A stretch of 64,000 nucleotides of DNA from Entomortierella parvispora E1425 (GCA_020891255.1 BQFW01000012.1:124001-188000), one strand, 5' to 3'; counted from the stretch's first letter, positions 8,926 to 58,177 are shown. The notes: generated by a model from the letters alone, not told the origin. A program made the numbers and translations.

Positions 8926-11900
8926 CTACAACCAGCTATTCAGCTGGACTGGTGCCGCGCCCGCTATGGCCGCCGCTGCTGTCGAGGCCGCGCTGTTGGT
9001 CAGCAAAGACGAATTGGACGAAAAGGAAGCTGTGGTTGTCAAGGGCGCACCCCCTGCCACCGCCGCCGCTGCTACGGTGGCTGTCGTAGGTCCAGCCTCA
9101 CTTGCCTTGCAGTTGGCCCTTAGCGGCTCCTCAGTCGACAGAGGCGAAGCCATACCCGTGGACGATTTGGAAGGAAACATGGGGTCCATCGGAGATGGTT
9201 CACATGGATGCAAGAAAGGCACAAACACCTGCTGCGCTGGGTGGTACACATGCTCTACTGGCCCTTGTCCCTGTCCTTGCATGGCCAATTGCTGCTGTTG
9301 AACCAATTGCTGTTGCAACTGTTGCTGGTAGATGTGTTGCTGTTGCTTTTGCTGCTGTTGAAACAATAGTTGCTGCTGATGATGATGAGCCGCGTAGATC
9401 GAAGGTGGGTGAATATGCTCTGCAAGGGCAGAACTCATAGTATTGACCGCTGCAGAGGCCGCCGCCACCGCCGCTGCCGCACCTGCGGCCATGGCGGCCG
9501 CAATCGGACTTTGAGAACCGTGGGCCGCATGACCATCCGGGGAAAGAGAAGGAGGAGTAGAAGCAGTAGTGGAACAGCCGTTCAAAAAGGCTGGGACCGA
9601 AGCCGAAGACGTGATTGTACCCGACGAGTACGAGGCCATGGTTAAAGGCACAGACGTGAGCACCATGGGTCCGGGCCCGGGTCCTGGAAGACTATTGACA
9701 CTGCCGTTGTGGTAGCTGGCCGCAAGCGAGGACGATGAATTGGACTTGCCTAGGATGACAGGGGCACTCACCAAATGTTGGCCTGTAGAGGCGGTAGTGT
9801 TGGCCGGGGTGGAAGTCGAGGTGGTAGCGCAACCTGTTGTGGCAAAGGCTGATGCACAAGTCGGCATGGAAGGAAGCGTCAGGTTCGTTGTCGAGGCTGT
9901 CAAGGACGCGGTGGTGGAGGTGGTTGTGGTCGTCGAGGACGACTTGATGACGCCACCTCCAGCCTTTGAACTCTCCTCCTGCAGCGAGCCGCCACGAATC
10001 AATGCCAATCCTCGCAACGCAGCCGGTGACAACTCCACGTCTCGTTTTGGAACCAGTGTCGCTGCCTTCATCGGAGTCAAGGAGCCGTTCGCGTTGCTAC
10101 CAATAGGTGCTGACACATGGCCAGCAGAGACCATAGCCTCCACCGTAGAAGTGACCATGATTGCATCCGAAGGATCAAGTCCTTTGGTGACCATGGTTCC
10201 CTCTGGAGGAGGCACATATGCGTGTGTGCTCGCCACAGCGTCGCCAATGACACAGTAATGACGGACCATCTCCACCAGATCCCGCTGCATTAATGGCTTT
10301 GTCACGTATCGCTCCATGCCCGAGTTGAGGCAGGCCTTGCGGGCCGTTTCCTGAATATCAGCCGAAACTGCCACAACAGGCAATCGAGGCACAGGTCCCT
10401 TGACCTCTGCCGCATGCTCCTTCTCCAATGCTCTAATTTGCTGAGTTGCTTGAACACCATCGCCTATTGCAAAAAACAATATATTCATTAGTTTTTTTTT
10501 TTTCTTATTTCAGCATTGCCCCACCTGTCAAAACCAAAAATCAAATACTTACAGTTCGGCATATGATGATCAAAAAAGCCCAGCGTAAAGTACCCTCTCG
10601 GATGCGACTTGAACAAGGCCAACGCATCCACACCATCGTTCGCACACGAGATCACCAGCCCAAACATGGCCAGCTGCTTGGACAGCACCTTTTGCGCAAT
10701 CTCATTGTCCTCTGCCAACAGGATCCGCATGCCCGTGATCCGCGCCGCCTCCTCCCGCGACAATGAAATCTCGCTCGCTTCATCTGTCACCAACTTGGAC
10801 GAGGTTTTGCTGGGCTTGGGGGAATTGGATTTCAACCGTCCGCCTGTGCCACTGCCGCCGTTCGCCATGTTGGCAAGCGAAGGCGATTTGGATTTCCTCA
10901 AGAAACTCACAGGTGGTGTCAGCGCTGGCTGAGGGGATGCGGTAGGCGTCAGCTCCAAATGGCCATTTTCCTTTGGATCCTTGTCTCCCGTCTCCACATC
11001 CGCGGCCGCTAGCAACGAACTGGTCGATTTGGAAAGGGAGATGGCAACAGGTTGTGCGATTTCACGCTCCAGAACCGTGACTACCTCTCCTGTTCCTGCT
11101 CCTGCTCCTTCTCCTTTTCCACTTGCGGCTTTGCCCGATGACTCTGTCGCCCCACCCTGTTGAGTCTGACTAATGGTCGCCTGCTCCAAAGATCGGCTCA
11201 GGAATTGAGATCCACTGTCTTCCTTTTGAAGATCAGGTCGCGAAGGGACAGACTCTGTGGAAGAGGAGGCTCCGGGGTTTGAGGCCACCTCCTTTCCTAG
11301 AGCACCTTCCAAAGACGACAACATGGAGAGCGAAGGACTGCGGGTCATGCTGGTGGGTGAAAGCGTGGCCGAGGACGTGATCGAGTTGGTGGGTGAAGAA
11401 ATAGGAGATCCCAAGGCCGTCGCATTCGAAGCCGTTGGACTAGATGGCGCCACAGAAGGTGTTGCACCTGCTGCACTGGTTCCTGCTGCTGTTCCTGCTG
11501 CTGCTCCTGCAACATTGGTCGCCACTGAGCACTTTTTTGCAGAATCATCCAAAATCTCGACAAACGCCCGCAAAAGCTTCAAACGGCGAATGGGTTTCGA
11601 GATGCAGGTAATGCGGAGACTGTTGAGTTTTTCGGGACTCAGACCTGGAACTTCGCTGCCCATCAAGGTCCCGCCCACAGAAGGTCCCGAGGGTGAAGAG
11701 CCACTGTTTTCGACGCGGAGTGAGATTGATTGACTGAGCATCGGTCGTCTCTTGACGGCCAACGAGGAGGTTGAAGGGGGATGTTGAAGGGACTGGGCTC
11801 GTTTGATAATGTCGGTCGCTGGGGTATACAGGAGCACGAAATGGACATTGTTCAACTCGGGGCGCGCCTTCAACTCCAACAATGTCTCGTGTTGAGGATC

Positions 11901-14900
11901 GTATTTCGGGAAATCCCAGCAGACGAAATCAAACCGGAATCCGTTCGCCACCGATTCTTCCAGTCGACTGACGGCCGTTGAGGGCAGGTTGGCCACCTCT
12001 GTGTTGCAATCGACCAAGTACGACTGCAAGGACTTGATGGTGGTCTCGCTCGTGGAGGCAATCAAAATGCGAGGGGTCCCCAGGGTGCGGGTGATGCGCT
12101 TGATCTCCTTGGTAGAATCGCCCACTTCGGTCTCTGAAAAACTGCCTACGGTGGCCTCGGGCAAGTTGCTCTTCTCGCACTGAATCACGAACCAGAATTT
12201 GGAGCCCTTGTCCCTGTCAGAGTTCAAACCGATACGACCCTTCATCAACCGGACGAGCTGCAAGCAAATGGACAGACCCAATCCAGATCCGCCATACGAT
12301 CGAGTCGCACTGCCGTCGACCTGCGAAAAGGGCGAGAACAACATGGCCTGCTCCTCTGGACTGATACCAATGCCCGTGTCCGTAACTGAAATCATCAACT
12401 TGATGGACGACTCGCTCAAGGGCTCTGGTGACGAGAACCGACCCGAGTTGGGGGGTCGAATCTCGGATTGACATTGTCCGCCTCCGTTCTTCTCGTGTCG
12501 GAAATAAAACTTGTCATCATCGTCATCAAACATGCCCGCTGACGGTGTCGAGATCAAATCCGTGTCCCGATCCAGCACTTTGCACTCGACCAACACATGG
12601 CCCGAATGCGTGAATTTGATGGCGTTGCCCACCAGGTTCAACAGGATCTGTTTGAGTCGGTTGCAGTCTCCAATCAAAATATCGGGCACATCACTGTTTT
12701 TGCAAAACGCGACCTCTAATGACTTTTTGAATGCCAGAGGTTTGACAATCTCTTCCACTTCCTCAAACACCTCTTCCAGGTCGAACGGGGATGCCTCCAG
12801 AGTGACCTTGTCGGCTTCCAGTTTTGAAAAGTCCAAGAGGTCGTCAATGATCATGAGCAGTTTTTCGCAACTGTCCTTGGCCGTCTCTACACACTCTTTT
12901 TGTTCTTCGTCCAAAGAAGAGTATCCCAGCAGAGTCAACATTCCATGGAATCCAGAGAATGGTCTATAATGATAACAAAAAAAAAGAATAAGCTTCCTTT
13001 CTGAAAACATAGCCAGACAACTTGAAGCAGATCCAACCATATGCGTACGTTCTTAGCTCGTGACTCATGTTGGCCAAAAAGTTGGATTTTTTGTGGAGCT
13101 CGGCCTTTTGCGCGAGGTAAAGATCATCTAGAGAAAGACAAAAGAAACGGCAATGAGTATAAGCAAGCTCATTCCATGGAGAGGAGCTGATGGGAAGGTC
13201 CGATAAAGGGCATAGTTCCTAGCTTACCGATATCGATCGTGACACCGATCCATTTGAGAATCGCTCCACTGTGGTTCAATACAGGGATGGCGCGAGAGAG
13301 ATGCCAGCGATAAACGCCATCATAGCGCATCAGCCTAAACTCGCAATCCTTGTAGACGCCCGTCTTGTAACTTTGCGAAACCTCCTTTTGGAATGAAGCC
13401 ACATCGTCCGGATGCATGGCGCTGATCCAGCGGTCACTCGTCCGTGTGTCTCCAGGCAGCCCTGTGAAATCAAACCAAGACCGTGACAAATATTGTCGAC
13501 TCGCCACATCATCTCGCTCTGCTGCCCAAACAAAACAAGGCAGTGCCTCCATCCATGAAAAGACCTCGTGCTCGTTCTAAATTGCCAAAAAATTAAAAAA
13601 GAATTTTGCAGGGTCAGTGTTTTTGTAATAATTCCCCCACTCTTCAAAATTGATTCCGGGATTCACGACGAGGTGGTGTTGAGCATTCGTACCTTTTGGA
13701 TCCTGGCAATAGTATCTTCAAGGAAACGATTCCGTTGCGTCGCCAAAGACAATTGCTTCTCCAATCCTGCAATCTTTTCACATTGCAACAGTGAGCTGGC
13801 CAGTTTTTGACAAAACAGAATCAACATGTCCTGATCCCGCTTGGAGAAATAAAACCGTGGGTGGAGGTGGTGAAGATACAAAGCACCCACCAAGGTCGAT
13901 GTGGATGAAGGCGCAGATGAGGATCCAGAAGTGCAAGTGCGCTTTCCAGAGGTCAGTGATGAAGTAGGTGCAGCCAAGATGATGGGCACACAGGCAATCG
14001 TGGGCAATTGAGAACGACTGCCCACGGCTGTTGAAAAGATGTGCTCTTTTGTGTCGAGGGCTTTGCGGACAAGGACTGGCATATGATCCCGTCTCTCTGA
14101 CAAATCGGTCCATGAAAGAGCCGACTGTGTTGTTCCCGGTTGGTACTTGTCCTCGATAATAGCCCAGGTGCCTCCATTGGGCAGGTGATCATCCTTTTGC
14201 CACAGAATAATGGCCATCTCCTCTGGTGGATGAACGACCAAAACATTGTCCAGGGCCTGAGAGATGGCCGGCAACATTTCTTGTAGATTGGTGATATGAC
14301 TGAGCGACAAGACCGACTCCAAGACAAACGCGCGATCTTCCGGTGACAGCCCCTCGTGCGGATGTGAAATCGAGGCCGATCTCCTGGATCCCGCGTCCGG
14401 GTCCTGACTCGAGGTTGATTGAATGGAAACTGTTGAATTAGTGGGGGACGTTGGGCGGGGCATACTGGATACTGAGGTATAGGAAGAAGAAAGAGCCGGC
14501 AGTGACAAGGGCGGTTTCGCTGCGGACGAAATAGGCATTCCATTTTCCGAAGATGTCCTGGTGTGGGCCTGGCCGGTGCGTTTAAAGAGAGGATATCCAG
14601 TCAGTAAGCAAATCATCCACGTTGCCCCATCTTCCTCATGGTGACAGGGAACAAAAGTCTAGGAGTCTGTGCTCTGTCGACTTTTTTTTTTTTCTTTCTT
14701 ACATGGAGCTCAATGTCCCGTTTGAGTGCATCCTGCTCCTGGTCTCGGATCAGCGTTAATTCTTTTCTGACCTGGATCATGCTCAGAAACCGATCTTTTG
14801 AGCTCTATGAAATCGTAAAATAGAAACAGGGTGCGGGCTGTGAGTATTGTGACAATAGAGTTGGCAGTTTCCTTGTCCAACAATGAACAGCCACTCTACC

Positions 14901-51341: not shown

Positions 51342-52979
51342 GTGCAATGCATGTCATCGATCCAGAATGGCAATGCCCAACACCGGCTAAACCCGTTTGA
51401 ACTTCTGGAAATCAGTTGTCTGATCCAGTCCTATCTCCAGGGCGATATTCGCGCCGTCTTGTCATGCTGTCTGGTCTCCAAGTCCTTCAACCGGGGCTTT
51501 CAGCCTCTTCTATGGGAGTCTCTGAGCATTACCCCATGCAAGAAAAATCAACTTCCTCGTATCCCTTCCGTCGACGTTCTTGAGGCAAAGAAAGATCTTG
51601 TCAAATCCATCAAGTTTGACTTGAGATACAACCCAGAGGACACCTTCGCGACCAAGATCTTGCCAAAGATCGAAACAACAACGTTCCCACACCTGAAAAG
51701 GCTCCATTTTTCTCTATTGAATTGGACCCAAGATCTAATAGACACATCGGCTGCTACTATCTACAATCATCAAAGAACGCTAGAGGAGTTGGAGCTGAGA
51801 GGCTTAGACTGTGCAGAGGAACCCGTACGACTATGGCGAAAGATCTTCGGCCTAGAGCAACTAAGGAAACTGGGTCTGCGCTCTGTGAACTTTATAGGGT
51901 TGGAGCAGAACAGTTTGTTCTGGAGGATCCTCACTAGCCCCAGTCTGCGAGAAGTTTGCCTGAATGACGTCTGTCTTATAGACAGCTCGGCCGAAGCAAT
52001 GGAGTTTGAGCAAGAAGAGCAACAACAACATCAAGGGCTACGACATTTAACCGTGATCAACATGCGTTGCGGGCACATTGAATACAGGCAGTTTCTCAGG
52101 ACCTTGGTTCGATTCACAAACCTCACTTTGCTTGTCTCGCATATGATCTCTGGCCTCTCAATATACGAGGTCTATCCGCTGCTGCGTTCGTTGGACAAGT
52201 GCTTTGATACGGCTAACCCAGGGCCCTACTGGAAACATCTCACAACATTCAGCTATCTTGACTGCGTCTTCATGGACGATGAGCAAAGTGGATCTTTTCT
52301 GGGGTCACTGAATCCAGGACTTAAAAACCTCAGCCTGGAAAAGTCGAGCTTTGGGGATATATCCTTACAGACGCTGATGCAACACCACTCGAAGACTCTG
52401 ACTCGACTGAATCTGATTTCGCCGAGCTATCCTACAGGGCGCATGGTCCGTGTTCTTCTTGGCAACTGCGAAAACCTAGAGTCACTCTGCGGGCTGGAAC
52501 TACCTATCTCAGATCTCACGCGCTGTGATGATCTACAACATGGTCGAGGATGTCTGGGTCGTTGTCATCTGTGGGTTTGCACAAACCTTCAGGAGTGGGG
52601 TGTTGATATTGACAACAACGTTGACGATTGTCCGTCATCCCTGGAGCTTGTAGCCTTTGAGCGTTTGTCAACATTGTCCAGGCTCAAGGCTATCATACTG
52701 AAGCCTTACTCTTCAAAACACAAAAAGCAGATTCGTTTCCAGCTAGGTTGTGGGCTCGAGCAATTGGAATTAAGAAGGGGCTCTTTGGAGGAGCTCCAAT
52801 TTGATCAGAGGTGGATTTCGCGAGAAGACTGGAAATGGATCATCGGCACCTTCAAACAATTGAACAAGGTGACAGCTTGCCAGGACTGGCCGAGGACCGC
52901 AAGAAGACTAGAGTTCCTGAGAAATCTTAGTTTGCAAAATCGTCGCATTGATTTCAACCTTGTACGTGTGGGATGTTGA
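51342..52979 (+). CDS. F-box/RNI-like LRR protein of the expanded Mortierellaceae-type family (intronless)
   Basis: NPFELLEISCLIQSYL...CCLVSKSF...LLW F-box, L..L.L repeats, and the C-terminal WVCTNLQ...FERLSTLSRL...LGCGLEQL...DWKWI signature. Confidence 0.8.
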   Translation: MQCMSSIQNGNAQHRLNPFELLEISCLIQSYLQGDIRAVLSCCLVSKSFNRGFQPLLWESLSITPCKKNQLPRIPSVDVLEAKKDLVKSIKFDLRYNPEDTFATKILPKIETTTFPHLKRLHFSLLNWTQDLIDTSAATIYNHQRTLEELELRGLDCAEEPVRLWRKIFGLEQLRKLGLRSVNFIGLEQNSLFWRILTSPSLREVCLNDVCLIDSSAEAMEFEQEEQQQHQGLRHLTVINMRCGHIEYRQFLRTLVRFTNLTLLVSHMISGLSIYEVYPLLRSLDKCFDTANPGPYWKHLTTFSYLDCVFMDDEQSGSFLGSLNPGLKNLSLEKSSFGDISLQTLMQHHSKTLTRLNLISPSYPTGRMVRVLLGNCENLESLCGLELPISDLTRCDDLQHGRGCLGRCHLWVCTNLQEWGVDIDNNVDDCPSSLELVAFERLSTLSRLKAIILKPYSSKHKKQIRFQLGCGLEQLELRRGSLEELQFDQRWISREDWKWIIGTFKQLNKVTACQDWPRTARRLEFLRNLSLQNRRIDFNLVRVGC

Positions 52980-54436
52980 TACCCACCAAGGAAAAAAAAA
53001 AGGAAAAAAAAATATAGGATCGTGCACGTTGTTCAGCCTGCACTGATTCATCCACAACGCACATGCTTGCTTGCCACATTTTCAGGATGGCAACAGAGCT
53101 CGACGACTGAACCGACTATGCAACACATTTGATCCAATCCCACCTCCACGTCCCTGTTGTCTCGTCTCCAAATCCTGACGCCAGGCCATTTGTTCTTTTT
53201 TTTTTCTTTGGGACAGTAATGCTCCTAAACAGAGGCTCACAACGATGAACAACTCTTGGCCTTGTCTGCTCCAATATCAACTCTGCCTATTTGCCTGGTC
53301 CTCATCCTTTAAACGGAAGGAAGAATATGACAAACTTTCCTACTCCTCGGCCTTTGCTGCAGGTACCCCTGCCAATCAATACCCATAGCTGGCTCAAAGT
53401 CCTTACAATTTACTGGCTGAAGAGCAATCGTGCTGATGTATTCAGAATACCCTGTTGGATGGAACCTCCCAGGCGCTTTTGTTTTGTGCAGCCTTTTTTC
53501 CGTTGCAAAAATGCTCAAAGTGGTTGACAAAGACGAAAGGAGGGATGGGCCTATTTTTTTTTCTTTGTGACATCAGATCGAGTGGATCTCGCCCTTGGAC
53601 CAATGTTTTGTTTTGAGATGGGGCCGTGCACCATGTCCAGTTGAGGCGGTTGGCATGGTAATGATTGTTTAGCGTTCGGACTTCTTTCCCGACTAACGCC
53701 TCGTGTTCACGATTGAGGTCTTTTTTCAAAGGCCTGGGAGAACCTTGAGGATTACATTCCTTTTCATGTTGACATCACACGCAAGGGTGGACAAAGGATA
53801 CCTATTTGAACAGTGTAAACACTGTGGACCACACTCACAGAGGAAGAGAGCTGACCATGAAAGTCCCCTTCTTCCTATCGCCTGTACAGACCACACCCGC
53901 ATGTGCAGACCCAACAGTAACAACAATGGGGAGGATCTTCTCGAGAGCATACGGTTTTTCGGACCAAAGGGGGTGCAAGGAGGGGGGTAAAATGGTGTGA
54001 AATGACGCGAGCGATGAGCAAAGAAGTGAAGTGTGGGAACAAAAAAAAGGCGACCTTCGATCTTTGCATGCTGCGTCCTTGATTGGTTGCTCCGGCGTTC
54101 AGTTTACTCTTCGGGCACAGAGAAAGAAAAATTGCTTTGTGGGGTGGGATGCACGCTGGATCCTCTGCCTGTGGCTCCATCCATTGTTCCGTGCAAGTGG
54201 TTGACCCAGAGAGATACGCGTGCATTGGAAACCCGATCAGAGAAATCAAAATCGTAAGCAAAAAGAGGCTCTTTCCTCTGGAGGTTGGATCCTATTTTTT
54301 TTTCCCTCGTCCCCTGCCAGAGGATAAAAGCAAATATATTTCATATTGCTTCTCTCCCTTCACCACTCCCTCTTCATTCATACACTCATACACTTCTAGC
54401 AGGAACCTTTCTTTCCTTTCTTCACCTCCTCACCAA

Positions 54437-55390
54437 ATGCCGATTCTGTGGGTTGTTCCATGGCGAAACCAGTACTTCCAGGACATTCAATGTCCTGAGG
54501 ATGTGATCGTCCCCACCAAAGATTTTCATGTCTGGCCCATGTATCCGGAACATCGCTGGATCTACGACAAGTTGGCGGTGGCCGTCTCTCAAGGACTGCA
54601 GGCTGCCCCCCATGGGGTGGCCCCGCCTTTCTACCCAGTCTTTAGCAAACCGATCATGAACTTGCGCGGCATGGGTGCTGGAAGCCTCATCATCCCGGAC
54701 GAGGCCACCTATCTGGCCTCACTCCAGCCTGGTCATTTTTGGTCTCCTCTTCACACGGGCGATCACGTCAGTTCCGACGCAGCTGTGATTGATGGTAAGC
54801 CCGTTTGGTGGCGTCATACGACCGGCATCGCCAGCGGTCGGGGGACGTTTGATTACTGGCACATCCATGCAGAGGCCATGCCTGAATTAGAGAGCTATTG
54901 CGGTGACTGGTGCAAAAAGCATCTGGCGGGATACACAGGAATGGCCAATTTTGAAACGATCGGGGGTCGGATCATCGAGGCTCACCTACGTCTGACGGAT
55001 CAATGGCCAGACCTGTACGGCGCAGGATGGTTGGATGCGGTCGTTCGGCTCTATGGGGAAGGCCAATGGGTCTTTGATGACAGCGATCGTCAGGACTGTT
55101 TCAGTGTCCTCTTGTTTACCCAACATGGACGGCAGCGTTATCCTCATCCCTCGGCAGAGAGCATGGCCAGGGTCCTAGCTGAGCCCGGGATCAAGAGCGT
55201 ACAGATCCCGTTTCAGGAGGACATGGACGCTTCCAAATACTCGATGCCTCCAGGCGGGTTCCGATTGGCCATTATCAATGCAACAACACTTGAGGCTGGA
55301 TTCTGGGCTCGAGATATGCTGAGGAAAGCCATCCTTCATCCCGAAAACGAAAGCAAGCAAGAGAAGCTTTTGCACTCGAGCCATATATAG
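54437..55390 (+). CDS. Bacterial-type ATP-grasp-like protein (317 aa, intronless), horizontal-transfer candidate
   Basis: FSKPIMNLRGMGAG (K-P..G.G loop), LHTGDHVSSD and NFETIGGRIIEAHLR (E-x-N/H-x-R-like) occur in ATP-grasp order. The upstream extension in the ORF track is probably not translated. Confidence 0.75.
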   Translation: MPILWVVPWRNQYFQDIQCPEDVIVPTKDFHVWPMYPEHRWIYDKLAVAVSQGLQAAPHGVAPPFYPVFSKPIMNLRGMGAGSLIIPDEATYLASLQPGHFWSPLHTGDHVSSDAAVIDGKPVWWRHTTGIASGRGTFDYWHIHAEAMPELESYCGDWCKKHLAGYTGMANFETIGGRIIEAHLRLTDQWPDLYGAGWLDAVVRLYGEGQWVFDDSDRQDCFSVLLFTQHGRQRYPHPSAESMARVLAEPGIKSVQIPFQEDMDASKYSMPPGGFRLAIINATTLEAGFWARDMLRKAILHPENESKQEKLLHSSHI

Positions 55391-55521
55391 AATATAAATA
55401 CTAAAAAAAAAAGAGATGACATTGCATTTATTTGCCGAACAATAAAACTCTTGTCTGAAAAGCAGATAGTCTTCAAGGGCGGATCCTTCTGGCCGTAAAC
55501 TGTACTTGGGGTATTGTTGTT

Positions 55522-57451
55522 TCAACCTTGGTAGCAATGAGTGTATAAAAGTAAATTCAACCTCTTCAGTCCTTTCATGATCCATTCCAAATCCTGGTCC
55601 AAGAGATAGTGTCCATCAAACGAGAGAACTCGCAACTCCTTCAAAGGCTGTAGCAGTTGTACTCCATGCTCCAGAACAGAGAGGAGCAATTAAACGAATA
55701 GGAAATCGAGATTGCAGACGAAGGATCGTCAGCCTCGTCAAAGCGGCGAAACATGAAGCGGGACTGGGTACTATAAAGATTGTCCCATCACGACGGGTTT
55801 TTGGCCTGTCGCATGATGCGCAAACGTTTCCACCGAACTTTGTGGTTTGACATGCTCGAGAATGTCGGATGAGGAGAGGAAGTGAAGTGAATAGAGAATG
55901 AACCGTAGTGACAAAAAAAAAAAAAAACTTTGGGTAACAGCGATCTGGCCTTTTATTTTGTTCTTTGCTATACCATCATGGCCCTGTGCAGTTCCAATAG
56001 GTCGGGGTCATACCTAATGGCGGTCAGGTGTGGGCAGGCAGTGACTATATCCGCCTCCATCGCCTCCGTCAGTGTTGGGCATCCTTCCAGATCTATGTCT
56101 CTCAGCGTTTGGGCATGTCGTGCAATCAATGCGTTTGTGGCCAGTTGACCGAACGCCGTCAATTGTAGTCCCAGTTCAGTCAGTCCTCGCTGCAGTGACA
56201 TTAAGATCGCACTGATTTTATCGTCCGCGAGATTTGGAACCGACAACTGGAGCCTTGTCAAACAAGGCCATAGTAGAGCTCTTTGATCATTTCCATCGAC
56301 CTCGGTAGGGACCAGCGGACAATAATGTCGGGCATCCGTAATCGTAACATCCCATTCGAGTGACTGCAAGTTTGAACAGCGCAGCAGCCGGCTTGCCAAC
56401 TCGTCAGCAAAGAGGCGCTTGATAAGAATACTGCGAAGGACAACCTTTTGCAACATCGGAGGATTTGGATGCCAAGTCCTCTCCAGATGAGCTGTAGGCC
56501 GATGTCCATATATGGATAAGTTCTGTAGCGTCAGCTCCATCCACGGGGTCGAAAAGGCCACATCCAGATCCAGACACTTTCTGTTGTCCATGATAACCAT
56601 GTTTGTCATATCCAAGTTCTGCAGTCGGGGCAAGTTTGCTAAAACGCTCCAGAACGGGTGACTGTCATTGGCATGCGGCATCCCCCTCAATCGTATGTGC
56701 CGTAAGCTCTTTCGATGGCGATGGATTAGTTCTGTGATTATCAGTCCGAAGTTGGCCTTCACCTCCAGTCTTGACAGATGTGGGTACTCCAGCTGTGCAT
56801 ACCGAATGGGGACATTCCCCCGCAATACCAGGGATTGAATCAAACCTCTTTTCGCCAGGATGTACCGGTAAGGAGTTTGGGTTCCTTGAAGCTCCAAGTC
56901 TCTCCAGATCAGGTGGATGAAGGACCGATGCCAGGTCTTGCAAACACGAAGCGAGGAGCAGATGGATCGACCTCCATGCAATCCGATATATGGCGCAACC
57001 ACGAACAAGATCTCGGGTAGTTCCAGAGGGCTCAATCGAAGCCGCGGTAGTGTTGGCCTTTTTGAGCATGCTGTCCTGAAGGTGACTGCAACAGCAACAA
57101 CAACAGAGTCCCCTGCCGCTAATCTTTCCAAGAGAGTCCTCACAACCTTGACCCATAATTGAATGGACCCCATGCGATTGGCAACAAGCTTGGAAAGCCT
57201 GAGGCGTAACTCGGAGAACATCACCTCGACTATGGCATAGACAACCTATAGAAGAGGCAGATGGGAGCAGGCGTAAGAACAAGGATATGGTACCAACGAA
57301 AACAAGAGCCAAGGCCGAATCTCACCAAAGGAAGCATGATGGCAAAGTAGACAGCCTGGAACATGTAGGAGTTGTCCCCAGGAAGCTGAGGAGGAAACGC
57401 GTCTGAAATGGTTTGCTCTCGCATGGGTGCAGGTTCTTGGGTTTCTGGCAT
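55522..57451 (-). CDS. F-box/LRR protein with N-terminal transmembrane helix; C-terminal exon appears frameshifted (possible pseudogene or base-call error)
   Basis: Exon 1 (57451-57326) plus exon 2 (from 57245) gives YMFQAVYFAIMLPLVVYAIVEVMF, followed by the F-box SPLELPEIL...RVCKTW...IW and LRRs. Terminal motifs LTRLTILRL and LEHGVQLLQPLKELRVL...DLEWIMK lie in different frames. Confidence 0.65.
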
Positions 57452-58177
57452 CGAAAATGATTGGGAAGAGCTCTGGGCAAGGGACGAAAAACGTGGAGGC
57501 GACGGACAAGAAGTTGGGTGCACGAAAAAGGCGGTCACTTGTGTGGGGGGTGCATTGTGTTGGGACATGCATGCATGCATGGCAGTGCACGCTCCATGTC
57601 ATCATGTCACCCCACCATCATCGTTATTGTCGTCAGGGGGACAAGCATAACACCGTGCGCCAGTAGAGCACATATATTGTCATAGGCTCAAAAGCAACCT
57701 TGCCTCGTCATCTCTGGACAGGAGGCCTCCATATTCTCTTCATGTCTCGGCCGACAACGGCCCTTGGTTCAGGGTTATATCCTCTTCATAGAGTAGCCTC
57801 AATTGCAAAAGGCGATTCTCTCAGCTCGCTTGCTGGGAAGCAACAGAGGCAGGAGGGTCAACTATAAACGGTTCTTTCGCGACTTGGATTGAGGCACTTG
57901 AAGGTTCGGCAAGAGTAAAATGTTGTCGTACAAATGCAATGGGCAAAGCAAGGGACACGCACCACTCTTGGTTTTCTGTTTGGGCCCTTCCCTCCTTCCT
58001 TTATCTCCCTCCCGTCCATCTTTCTTTCCTCTTCCACAACACCAATTCCCCAAGCCTTCCACATCGTCTCGCCTGCTTCGCCCACTTATATTTATCAAAT
58101 GGCAGTTGGCCTGCATAGAAAGGTATTACCTTGCATTGCCTTCGATTGGAGTTGATATTTGTTTTCAAATTCTTAGA

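Follow-up and report, generated by a model that had tools for sequence, protein, structure and literature searches.

The window analysed here, a 64,000-nucleotide stretch of the genome of Entomortierella parvispora E1425 (GCA_020891255.1 BQFW01000012.1:124001-188000), carries at 54437-55390 (+) an intronless gene for a compact protein of 317 amino acids (aa), which we refer to as the window gene and the window protein. The interpretation that we prefer, with a probability of roughly 0.7, is that this is a functional nuclear gene of Mortierellaceae, that it descends from one old transfer from a Rhodopila-like lineage of Acetobacteraceae, and that its product is a compact ATP-grasp enzyme of the ligase type. 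A stand-alone bacterial gene would have entered an ancestor of Mortierellaceae, taken on a fungal base composition and a short tail, stayed intronless, and come to be transcribed and held under purifying selection. The data show the gene itself, its integration, transcription, selection and phylogenetic nesting, and the fold; the use of ATP, the ligase chemistry and the roles of single residues are what we infer by analogy with known enzymes. A note made earlier from the sequence alone had already proposed a horizontally acquired ATP-grasp gene at this locus, and is called the original prediction below.

Gene model and family

The compact, Trp- and His-rich open reading frame (ORF) of the original prediction is present, with 4.1% Trp and 5.0% His, and so are the six peptides quoted from it, all of which are conserved in bacterial homologs. 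Mechanically, the ORF extends 5' as far as a TTG at 54083. All homologs share the Met-Pro start, M1 and P2 being invariant across an alignment of 10 fungal and 20 bacterial homologs, and 54437 is therefore taken as the true start. The gene had been called intronless, and it is indeed colinear with bacterial proteins and covered by a gap-free, transcript-like contig described below. A second 317-aa ORF in the window (13663-14616, minus strand) was considered as a second copy and rejected, its sequence being unrelated.

A search of 5.8 billion proteins returned 5033 homologs. Among the best 120 of the 5033, from which the taxonomy was drawn, the named ones belong to Mortierellaceae or to Rhodopila, Acetobacteraceae and other Rhodospirillales-type proteobacteria, with Mortierellaceae as the only eukaryotes. 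The top matches are from Podila minutissima (75% identity) and Mortierella alpina (70%); Entomortierella, Gamsiella, M. polycephala, Haplosporangium, a Benniella metagenome-assembled genome (MAG) and others have proteins with 59-70% identity, and the window protein shares a 90% cluster with Podila clonocystis, which makes the genome that of a Podila-type species. After the fungal matches comes a dense series of bacterial proteins of ~300 aa with 61-68% identity, those with names being from Rhodopila, Acetobacteraceae and Rhodospirillales. Moreover, at least 587 bacterial genome stretches, in a collection with one genome per species, encode a relative. Nearly all of the best 80 of these are labelled Alphaproteobacteria (Rhodopila, Acidisphaera, other Acetobacteraceae, Reyranellaceae and Vineibacter), the exception being one MAG labelled Nitrosovibrio. 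An exhaustive HMMER scan of 50%-identity representatives gave 973 clusters at E<=0.001, and the family amounts to about 1000 clusters at 50% identity and more than 5000 at 90%. No homolog was found in a plasmid search. Of the resemblance to Rhizobiales-type alphaproteobacterial proteins that had been claimed originally, the alphaproteobacterial part holds (57-68% identity) and the Rhizobiales part does not, the relatives being Acetobacteraceae, Reyranellaceae and Vineibacter.

The family also matches phrog_3577, to which no function is assigned there, and residues 37-191 match a hypothetical ORF of Synechococcus phage ACG-2014f. Outside these groups lies a distant fusion relative, the AlphaFold DB cluster representative Q0CK13 (1242 aa; presumably from Aspergillus terreus, to judge by the accession prefix). 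Its residues 1-323 match the whole window protein with 35% identity and a template modelling (TM) score of 0.77, and it is the only close AlphaFold DB match without an ATP-grasp name. Unlike the window protein it is a long fusion protein. We do not regard it as a vertical relative, since its 35% identity puts it at a much greater distance than the Acetobacteraceae proteins.

Horizontal transfer and residence in the fungal genome

Phylogenetic analysis agrees with the transfer proposed in the original prediction. The tree (IQ-TREE, LG+C20 PMSF) comprises 51 sequences, 13 of them from at least six genera of Mortierellaceae. These 13 form a single group with 99/87 support, as they do in 100% of 200 bootstrap trees, and a short stem of 0.088 joins them to the Rhodopila-type proteins, a clade with 100/99 support in which they are nested. 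Several members of the Rhodopila-type clade come from bacterial chromosomes of 3.6-5.6 Mb. This clade is itself nested within other Acetobacteraceae/Rhodospirillales (nodes 95/95, 90/90, 94/89 and 100/98), with Reyranella and Vineibacter basal in the tree. The nesting is independent of the root unless the root falls on the short fungal stem. A constraint that united the fungi with the outgroup, and so in effect held the close bacteria in one clade, lowered the likelihood by 17 log units, and the alternative was marginally rejected by the approximately unbiased (AU) test (p-AU 0.032). The tree places the donor in Acetobacteraceae, and not in the Rhizobiales-type source first suggested; judging from the sequences, it belongs to a Rhodopila-like lineage of acid-soil alphaproteobacteria.

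The setting of the gene is fungal. In at least 10 independent Mortierellaceae assemblies the ortholog is flanked by intron-bearing eukaryotic genes, its neighbours including ABC transporters, MatE, a fatty-acid desaturase, eIF3 zeta, ribosomal proteins L5e and L24e, Myb and a ubiquitin-conjugating enzyme. None of the orthologs of M. alpina, P. minutissima, P. clonocystis and Gamsiella contains an intron. ORFs of the window are of eukaryotic type, as had been claimed for the flanks: they include an aspartyl protease exon, a hybrid histidine kinase, WD40 repeats and a weak F-box-like match (the upstream neighbour), and another neighbour contains a spliced GT..AG intron. The GC content at third codon positions (GC3) of the window gene, 0.61, is close to that of the fungal ORFs around it (0.51-0.60) and below that of the bacterial homologs (0.75-0.88). 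The ratio of nonsynonymous to synonymous substitutions (dN/dS) between the window gene and that of P. clonocystis is 0.06 at a dS of 0.82, and lies at 0.07-0.15 in the other computable pairs, where dS is saturated. Such ratios indicate that the window gene is under purifying selection.

A C-terminal tail of ~15-20 residues is present in 9 of 10 aligned fungal proteins, the exception being the Benniella MAG protein, and absent from 20 of 20 bacterial ones. It ends in G-H-I in P. clonocystis, S-H-L in M. alpina, N-S-L in Entomortierella, and S-S-L in Gamsiella, M. polycephala, Haplosporangium and Mortierella sp. GBA30. The S-H-L end fits the pattern of the type 1 peroxisomal targeting signal (PTS1), and the other ends fit it poorly; a role of the tail in targeting is possible but weak on these sequences.

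Contigs of public sequencing runs were compared with positions 52200-57800 of the window. Those of runs X1 and X2 are from the same sample as the assembly, and hence not independent of it. A single DNA contig of run X1 spans the whole interval with 0 differences and even depth, and in crossing both gene borders it gives no sign of the chimeric join that the original prediction had named as a way in which it could fail. Run X2 resembles a transcriptome in its behaviour, its contigs covering gene bodies only. One of 962 letters extends across 54434-55380 with no gaps or differences at a depth of 81, and a contig over the downstream neighbour skips 57244-57323 with CT..AC on the plus strand, that is, an 80-nt GT..AG intron of this minus-strand gene. 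Run X2 is labelled only 'DNA?' and the index lists no RNA run; with the library type guessed in this way, we read the X2 contig as the window gene being transcribed as an unspliced mRNA. The contig begins 3 nt before the ATG (54434), with Illumina adapter letters ahead of it, which suggests that numerous fragments end at this point and that the 5' leader is perhaps very short; alternatively, it could be an assembly break at a CT-rich repeat. From run X4, which bears the same species label, a 273-letter contig (depth 791) matches 54436-54508 with 7 differences in the first 73 coding letters, and carries an unrelated leader of 200 letters. It is probably the ortholog transcript of a diverged strain.

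Bacterial contamination or a chimeric assembly would account for the high identity to bacterial proteins and for the absence of an intron. The probability of this is negligible in view of the one DNA contig with even depth over both borders, the fungal GC3, the fungus-specific tail, the orthologs lying among intron-bearing genes in independent assemblies, and the monophyly of the fungal sequences. As far as these data go, contamination is ruled out by the intronless orthologs, the eukaryotic neighbours, GC3, dN/dS and the shared tail taken together. It is also conceivable that the gene entered Mortierellaceae several times, or passed from fungi to bacteria, for the divergence among the fungal proteins (59-75% identity) is as large as that from bacteria (~65%), M. 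alpina and M. polycephala fall in different subclades, and synteny is not common to the fungal loci. A blastn comparison of the window with the P. clonocystis locus, for instance, aligns only 54411-55391, at 85%. Both courses of events are very unlikely given the one fungal clade recovered in every bootstrap tree, the tail in most fungal sequences, the size and variety of the bacterial family (973 clusters at 50%, at least 587 genome stretches), and the confinement of fungi, among the named matches seen, to one family. We favour on these sequence data a single transfer before the genera of Mortierellaceae diverged. The transfer is old and family-wide, and not peculiar to the window genome.

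Two neighbours of Podila orthologs are of interest in their own right. The ortholog of P. minutissima is preceded, at a distance of 3.6 kb, by a 902-aa Cas12f1-like_TNB (Fanzor-type) gene (L082:2451-6407). That of P. clonocystis is followed ~1 kb downstream by the gene of a 349-aa protein whose C-terminal domain is that of cucumopine synthase, the Agrobacterium opine-synthase type (L088:7219-8268); this gene may be another bacterial-type acquisition. This Cucumopine_C gene was dismissed as a partner of the ortholog, since it occurs neither in the window nor at the other loci examined.

Predicted fold and structural relatives

A first AlphaFold model, made with 30 close homologs, was poor at residues 54-105 and was replaced; it already matched ATP-grasp enzymes only. 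The model made from 79 diverse members has a predicted local distance difference test (pLDDT) score of 95.4 and a predicted TM (pTM) score of 0.91. VIA-align matched it to 621 chains at Z>=8, and the best 50 of the 621 are all ATP-grasp enzymes: PurD (3LP8, Z 20.6), an L-amino-acid ligase (3VOT, Z 20.4) and BacD (3VMM, Z 20.1) lead, and several entries of biotin carboxylase, PurT and PurK reach Z values of about 18, each match covering 284-291 of 317 residues at 3.1-4.2 A. Foldseek gave 448 matches at E<=0.001, with 3VOT at the top (E 7e-12), followed by RizA. Neighbours in the ESM-Atlas are ATP-grasp_4/LAL_C2 clusters (TM 0.70-0.74), and those in Swiss-Prot are RizA, DdaF (dapdiamide synthase), FsqD, BtrJ and PylC. 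The model firmly predicts that the window protein has the three-part alpha/beta ATP-grasp fold, as the original prediction had it.

The window protein is ~100 residues shorter than the enzymes matched (317 vs ~390-470 aa), and the lid domain looks much reduced, judging from lengths and secondary structure, because only ~28 residues lie between Lys71 and the G-H-F-W hinge. The L-amino-acid ligases (BL00235/3VOT, BacD/YwfE 3VMM/3WNZ and RizA 4WD3) are stand-alone small-molecule ligases with the same fold (Z 19.7-20.4, 287-291 aligned residues, Foldseek E 7e-12 and 1.5e-11). In contrast to them, the window protein has 10-14% identity, no match to ATP-grasp_4/LAL_C2, a length of 317 aa vs 411-471 (90-150 residues less), reduced N-terminal and lid parts, and the motif E-x-H-x-R; with no Pfam match, it was not placed in the L-amino-acid ligase family, which it resembles in fold only. 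PurD (3LP8, 2YW2 and 2XCL) is the top structural match (Z 19.9-20.6, root-mean-square deviation 3.1-3.3 A), yet the window protein has no HMMER-detectable similarity to it and is ~100 residues shorter, and the purine-operon context of PurD is absent from the family, save for one distant relative beside a SAICAR synthetase gene.

Conserved residues and proposed chemistry

Conservation was counted over the 79 members, which have 26-74% identity to the window protein. D114 and N171 are invariant (79/79), and nearly so are P72 (78/79), E173 (77/79), E or D at 181 (77/79), R185 (77/79), N75 (75/79), H183 (75/79), K71 (74/79) and R276 (72/79). K71-P72 and G78-x-G80-x-G82 are conserved, and residues 68-72 form a strand in the model; by motif analogy, the Lys and the loop may contact the phosphates, and here we take the V-I-I-K-A...G-G-G motif of biotin carboxylase to be the analogue. 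The sequence F-E-F-L ... Y-F-I-E-M-N-T-R of Escherichia coli biotin carboxylase presumably provides the counterpart of the second block, E173, E181, H183 and R185 mapping to Glu276, Glu288, Asn290 and Arg292.

The replacement of E-x-N-x-R by E-A-H-L-R, pointed out in the original prediction, proved to be family-wide: position 183 is never Asn among the 79 members. The motif does not reflect decay in the fungus, because His is common to the whole family. With E173, E/D181 and R185 kept, E-x-H-x-R appears to be a variant of the ATP-grasp metal motif, and not a loss of it. His183 in place of Asn may change the metal preference.

By analogy, the window protein is most likely an ATP-dependent carboxylate-amine ligase. 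The ATP site would lie between the central sheet and the C-terminal one, and Lys71 and the Gly-rich loop would contact the phosphates. The carboxylate of the substrate would be activated as an acyl phosphate, with metal ions held by Glu173, Glu181 and His183, and an amine would then attack the acyl phosphate with the help of Arg185, giving an amide. The same Asn-to-His exchange in 75 of 79 members and the shortened lid region could also mean that the ATP-grasp fold serves something other than ligation here, as a kinase, a metal enzyme using His183 and the many conserved His and Trp residues, or a hydrolase. The automatic UniProt name of the P. minutissima ortholog, 'DAPG hydrolase PhiG domain-containing protein', points to the last of these. 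We think this unlikely, as Lys71, Glu173, Glu/Asp181 and Arg185 are kept and all strong structural matches are ATP-grasp enzymes. The PhiG identity itself was discarded: there is no Pfam PhiG match and no PDB PhiG sequence match at E<=10, and the fold is that of ATP-grasp enzymes.

A ligase of this kind need not act on a small metabolite. Modification of a protein or peptide, such as RimK- or TTL-like tailing, would suit a gene that usually stands alone without a biosynthetic operon, and phage-like contigs contain some of the relatives, with a Clp-type protease and a YadA-head-like protein as neighbours; the matches to phrog_3577 and the cyanophage ORF fit as well. Nonetheless, the structural neighbours are small-molecule ligases (PurD, L-amino-acid ligases, PurT and PurK), not RimK or TTL, and a partner protein is not conserved, which makes tailing quite unlikely.

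Bacterial neighbourhoods

The neighbourhood analysis called for by the original prediction yielded three lineage-specific types and no conserved operon. In type A, the Rhodopila-type that is nearest to the fungal clade, an aldo-keto reductase gene comes first, followed by the family gene and then by those of a 647-aa AI-2E-family transporter and an endonuclease/exonuclease/phosphatase-family protein; at locus L004 the reductase gene ends in a stop codon that overlaps the ATG-position start codon of the family gene. In type B, found in other Acetobacteraceae, the family gene lies 9-15 nt downstream of a cox/xdh maturation row, with genes for CoxG, MoxR ATPase, ChaC, CoxE, XdhC and a MobA-like transferase. 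In type C, that of Reyranellaceae and Vineibacter, it is divergent from egtB-egtD. The aldo-keto reductase was rejected as a recurrent partner, the reductases of two contexts being only 25% identical. An upstream gene of 552 aa that had seemed to be a tandem paralog was a clustering artefact; it encodes a MobA-like nucleoside triphosphate (NTP) transferase with no similarity to the query. Many Acetobacteraceae have, directly upstream of the family gene, a row that reads coxG - MoxR ATPase - ChaC - CoxE (VWA) - split XdhC - 552-aa MobA-like NTP transferase (L073:8333-9988 and neighbours); ChaC is an unusual member of such a cox-maturation row. The neighbours of other distant members are unrelated, and in two phage-like contigs (L087:6214-9761 and the contig of P0135) distant members lie between a YadA-head-like protein and a Clp-type protease.

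The egt context raises a more specific possibility, that the protein works in a pathway of thiols derived from histidine (ergothioneine, hercynine or thiohistidine). It might, for example, join one of these to an amino acid, and the fungus would have gained this tailoring step. At 16 loci of Reyranellaceae, Vineibacter and related bacteria the gene divergently adjoins egtB (DinB_2 and FGE-sulfatase) and egtD (Methyltransf_33, E 4e-111), and an EgtB/OvoA-type sulfoxide synthase is found beside the family gene at 17 bacterial loci, none of them of the Rhodopila or cox type. A frameshift-ridden metagenomic contig (L083:478-3591) has egtB, egtD and a distant family member in a co-directional row, possibly an operon of the ergothioneine type to which an ATP-grasp gene has been added. 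The link has precedent in a 2026 paper, which showed that 2-thiohistidine dipeptides are made by EgtB-type sulfoxide synthases (NHISS) and the RimK-like ATP-grasp enzymes that cluster with them (PMC13674229). In both the NHISS clusters (AshB and TgiB) and a part of the window family, an ATP-grasp gene adjoins that of an EgtB-type enzyme. However, the NHISS-associated enzymes are RimK-like, with one YbdK-like, and their clusters lack egtD (PMC13674229), whereas the window protein is PurD/L-amino-acid ligase-like with no RimK match. Furthermore, the link is limited to some lineages: the Rhodopila-type lineage, most Acetobacteraceae and 6 of 7 other distant relatives have other neighbours, and no egt gene occurs in the window or near any fungal locus examined. 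The trimethylated amine of hercynine and ergothioneine would also leave only the carboxylate for ligation. A role in thiol metabolism is rather unlikely on balance. The bolder idea that the E-x-H-x-R ATP-grasp family is a new ligase class tailoring histidine-derived thiols is a doubtful one; if true, Mortierellaceae acquired from Acetobacteraceae the ability to make a new thio-imidazole conjugate.

Evidence that weighs against the preferred interpretation

An old transfer of a ligase-type ATP-grasp gene, which remains our preferred interpretation, has to be set against several observations that count the other way. By sequence, the window protein had no match in Pfam and NCBIfam at E<=10, and a PDB sequence search with HMMER gave none either with the single sequence or with a 50-sequence family profile; ATP-grasp_3 matched one distant relative at 18.3 bits, below the cut-off of 23.2. 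The reduced lid in the model means that ATP binding may differ, the canonical E-x-N (E-x-N-x-R) is not present in any of the 79 members, and the residue roles come from motif analogy, not from a residue-level superposition. A conserved operon that would point to the substrate is not found in the neighbourhoods examined. As for the transfer, the homolog taxonomy covers the best 120 of 5033, the outgroups of the tree are long branches, and the AU p-value of 0.032 is modest. Transcription of the gene rests on run X2, the library type of which is guessed and the sample of which is shared with the assembly.

Other features of the window

Features of the gene and its flanks are collected in Table 1. 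The downstream neighbour, on the minus strand at 55962-57473 (ORF 55968-57224), is F-box/LRR-like (leucine-rich repeat) with no Pfam match, and is transcribed; its true start lies in an upstream exon, because of the 80-nt intron at 57244-57323. A hybrid histidine kinase (HisKA, HATPase_c and receiver) at 8926-13040, minus strand, is split over two adjacent ORFs in different frames. Its receiver domain runs across the ORF junction at 10488, where there is probably an intron or a frame change.

Table 1. Features of the window gene and its flanks
Feature	Position	Strand	Basis
Intronless coding sequence of the 317-aa putative compact ATP-grasp protein, ATG to TAG, stop included	54437..55390	+	ORF and translation, homolog start, fold, transcript-like contig
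P-V-F-S-K71-P strand, then Gly-rich loop G-M-G-A-G-S (P-V-F-S-K-P-I-M-N-L-R-G-M-G-A-G-S); proposed phosphate-binding Lys and loop	54635..54685	+	Motif analogy
G99-H-F-W102 ... G108-x-H110-x-S112-x-D114 block; hinge and central sheet	54731..54778	+	Conservation counts; model strands 100-104 and 110-118
N171-F-E173 ... E181-A-H183-L-R185 beta-hairpin (N-F-E-T-I-G-G-R-I-I-E-A-H-L-R); proposed metal and catalytic residues	54947..54991	+	Conservation; model strands 168-175 and 178-183
Fungus-specific C-terminal tail, ending in S-H-I	55337..55387	+	Alignment; predicted helix 303-316, lower confidence
Pyrimidine-rich upstream leader or promoter region	54340..54436	+	Sequence; similarity to the P. clonocystis locus begins at 54411
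AATAAA, candidate polyadenylation signal, ~50 nt 3' of the stop	55441..55446	+	Pattern search

Significance

Bacterial genes in Mortierellaceae are not without precedent. Known bacterium-to-Mortierellaceae transfers include a bacterial-like nonribosomal peptide synthetase in M. alpina, NOD-like receptors from Mycoavidus and ice-nucleating proteins. A catalogue of transfers into early-diverging fungi names Burkholderiales and Actinomycetia as the main donors (PMC11291939). The window gene is unlike these transfers, being a single unannotated enzyme with an Acetobacteraceae donor, and the main text of the catalogue names no ATP-grasp, no Acetobacter and not the window gene (PMC11291939). In the literature searched, we found no paper joining Mortierella, horizontal transfer and ATP-grasp.

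With this gene, Mortierellaceae gain a further bacterial xenolog that is well supported, expressed and under selection; these fungi are of industrial use (M. alpina), and other bacterial acquisitions are known in them. The gene also exposes a large family of proteins with a predicted ATP-grasp fold that has no Pfam or NCBIfam annotation and reaches into phages. Its retention across kingdoms makes it probable that the product is of physiological use, and with the substrate identified, thousands of hypothetical proteins would receive an annotation together.

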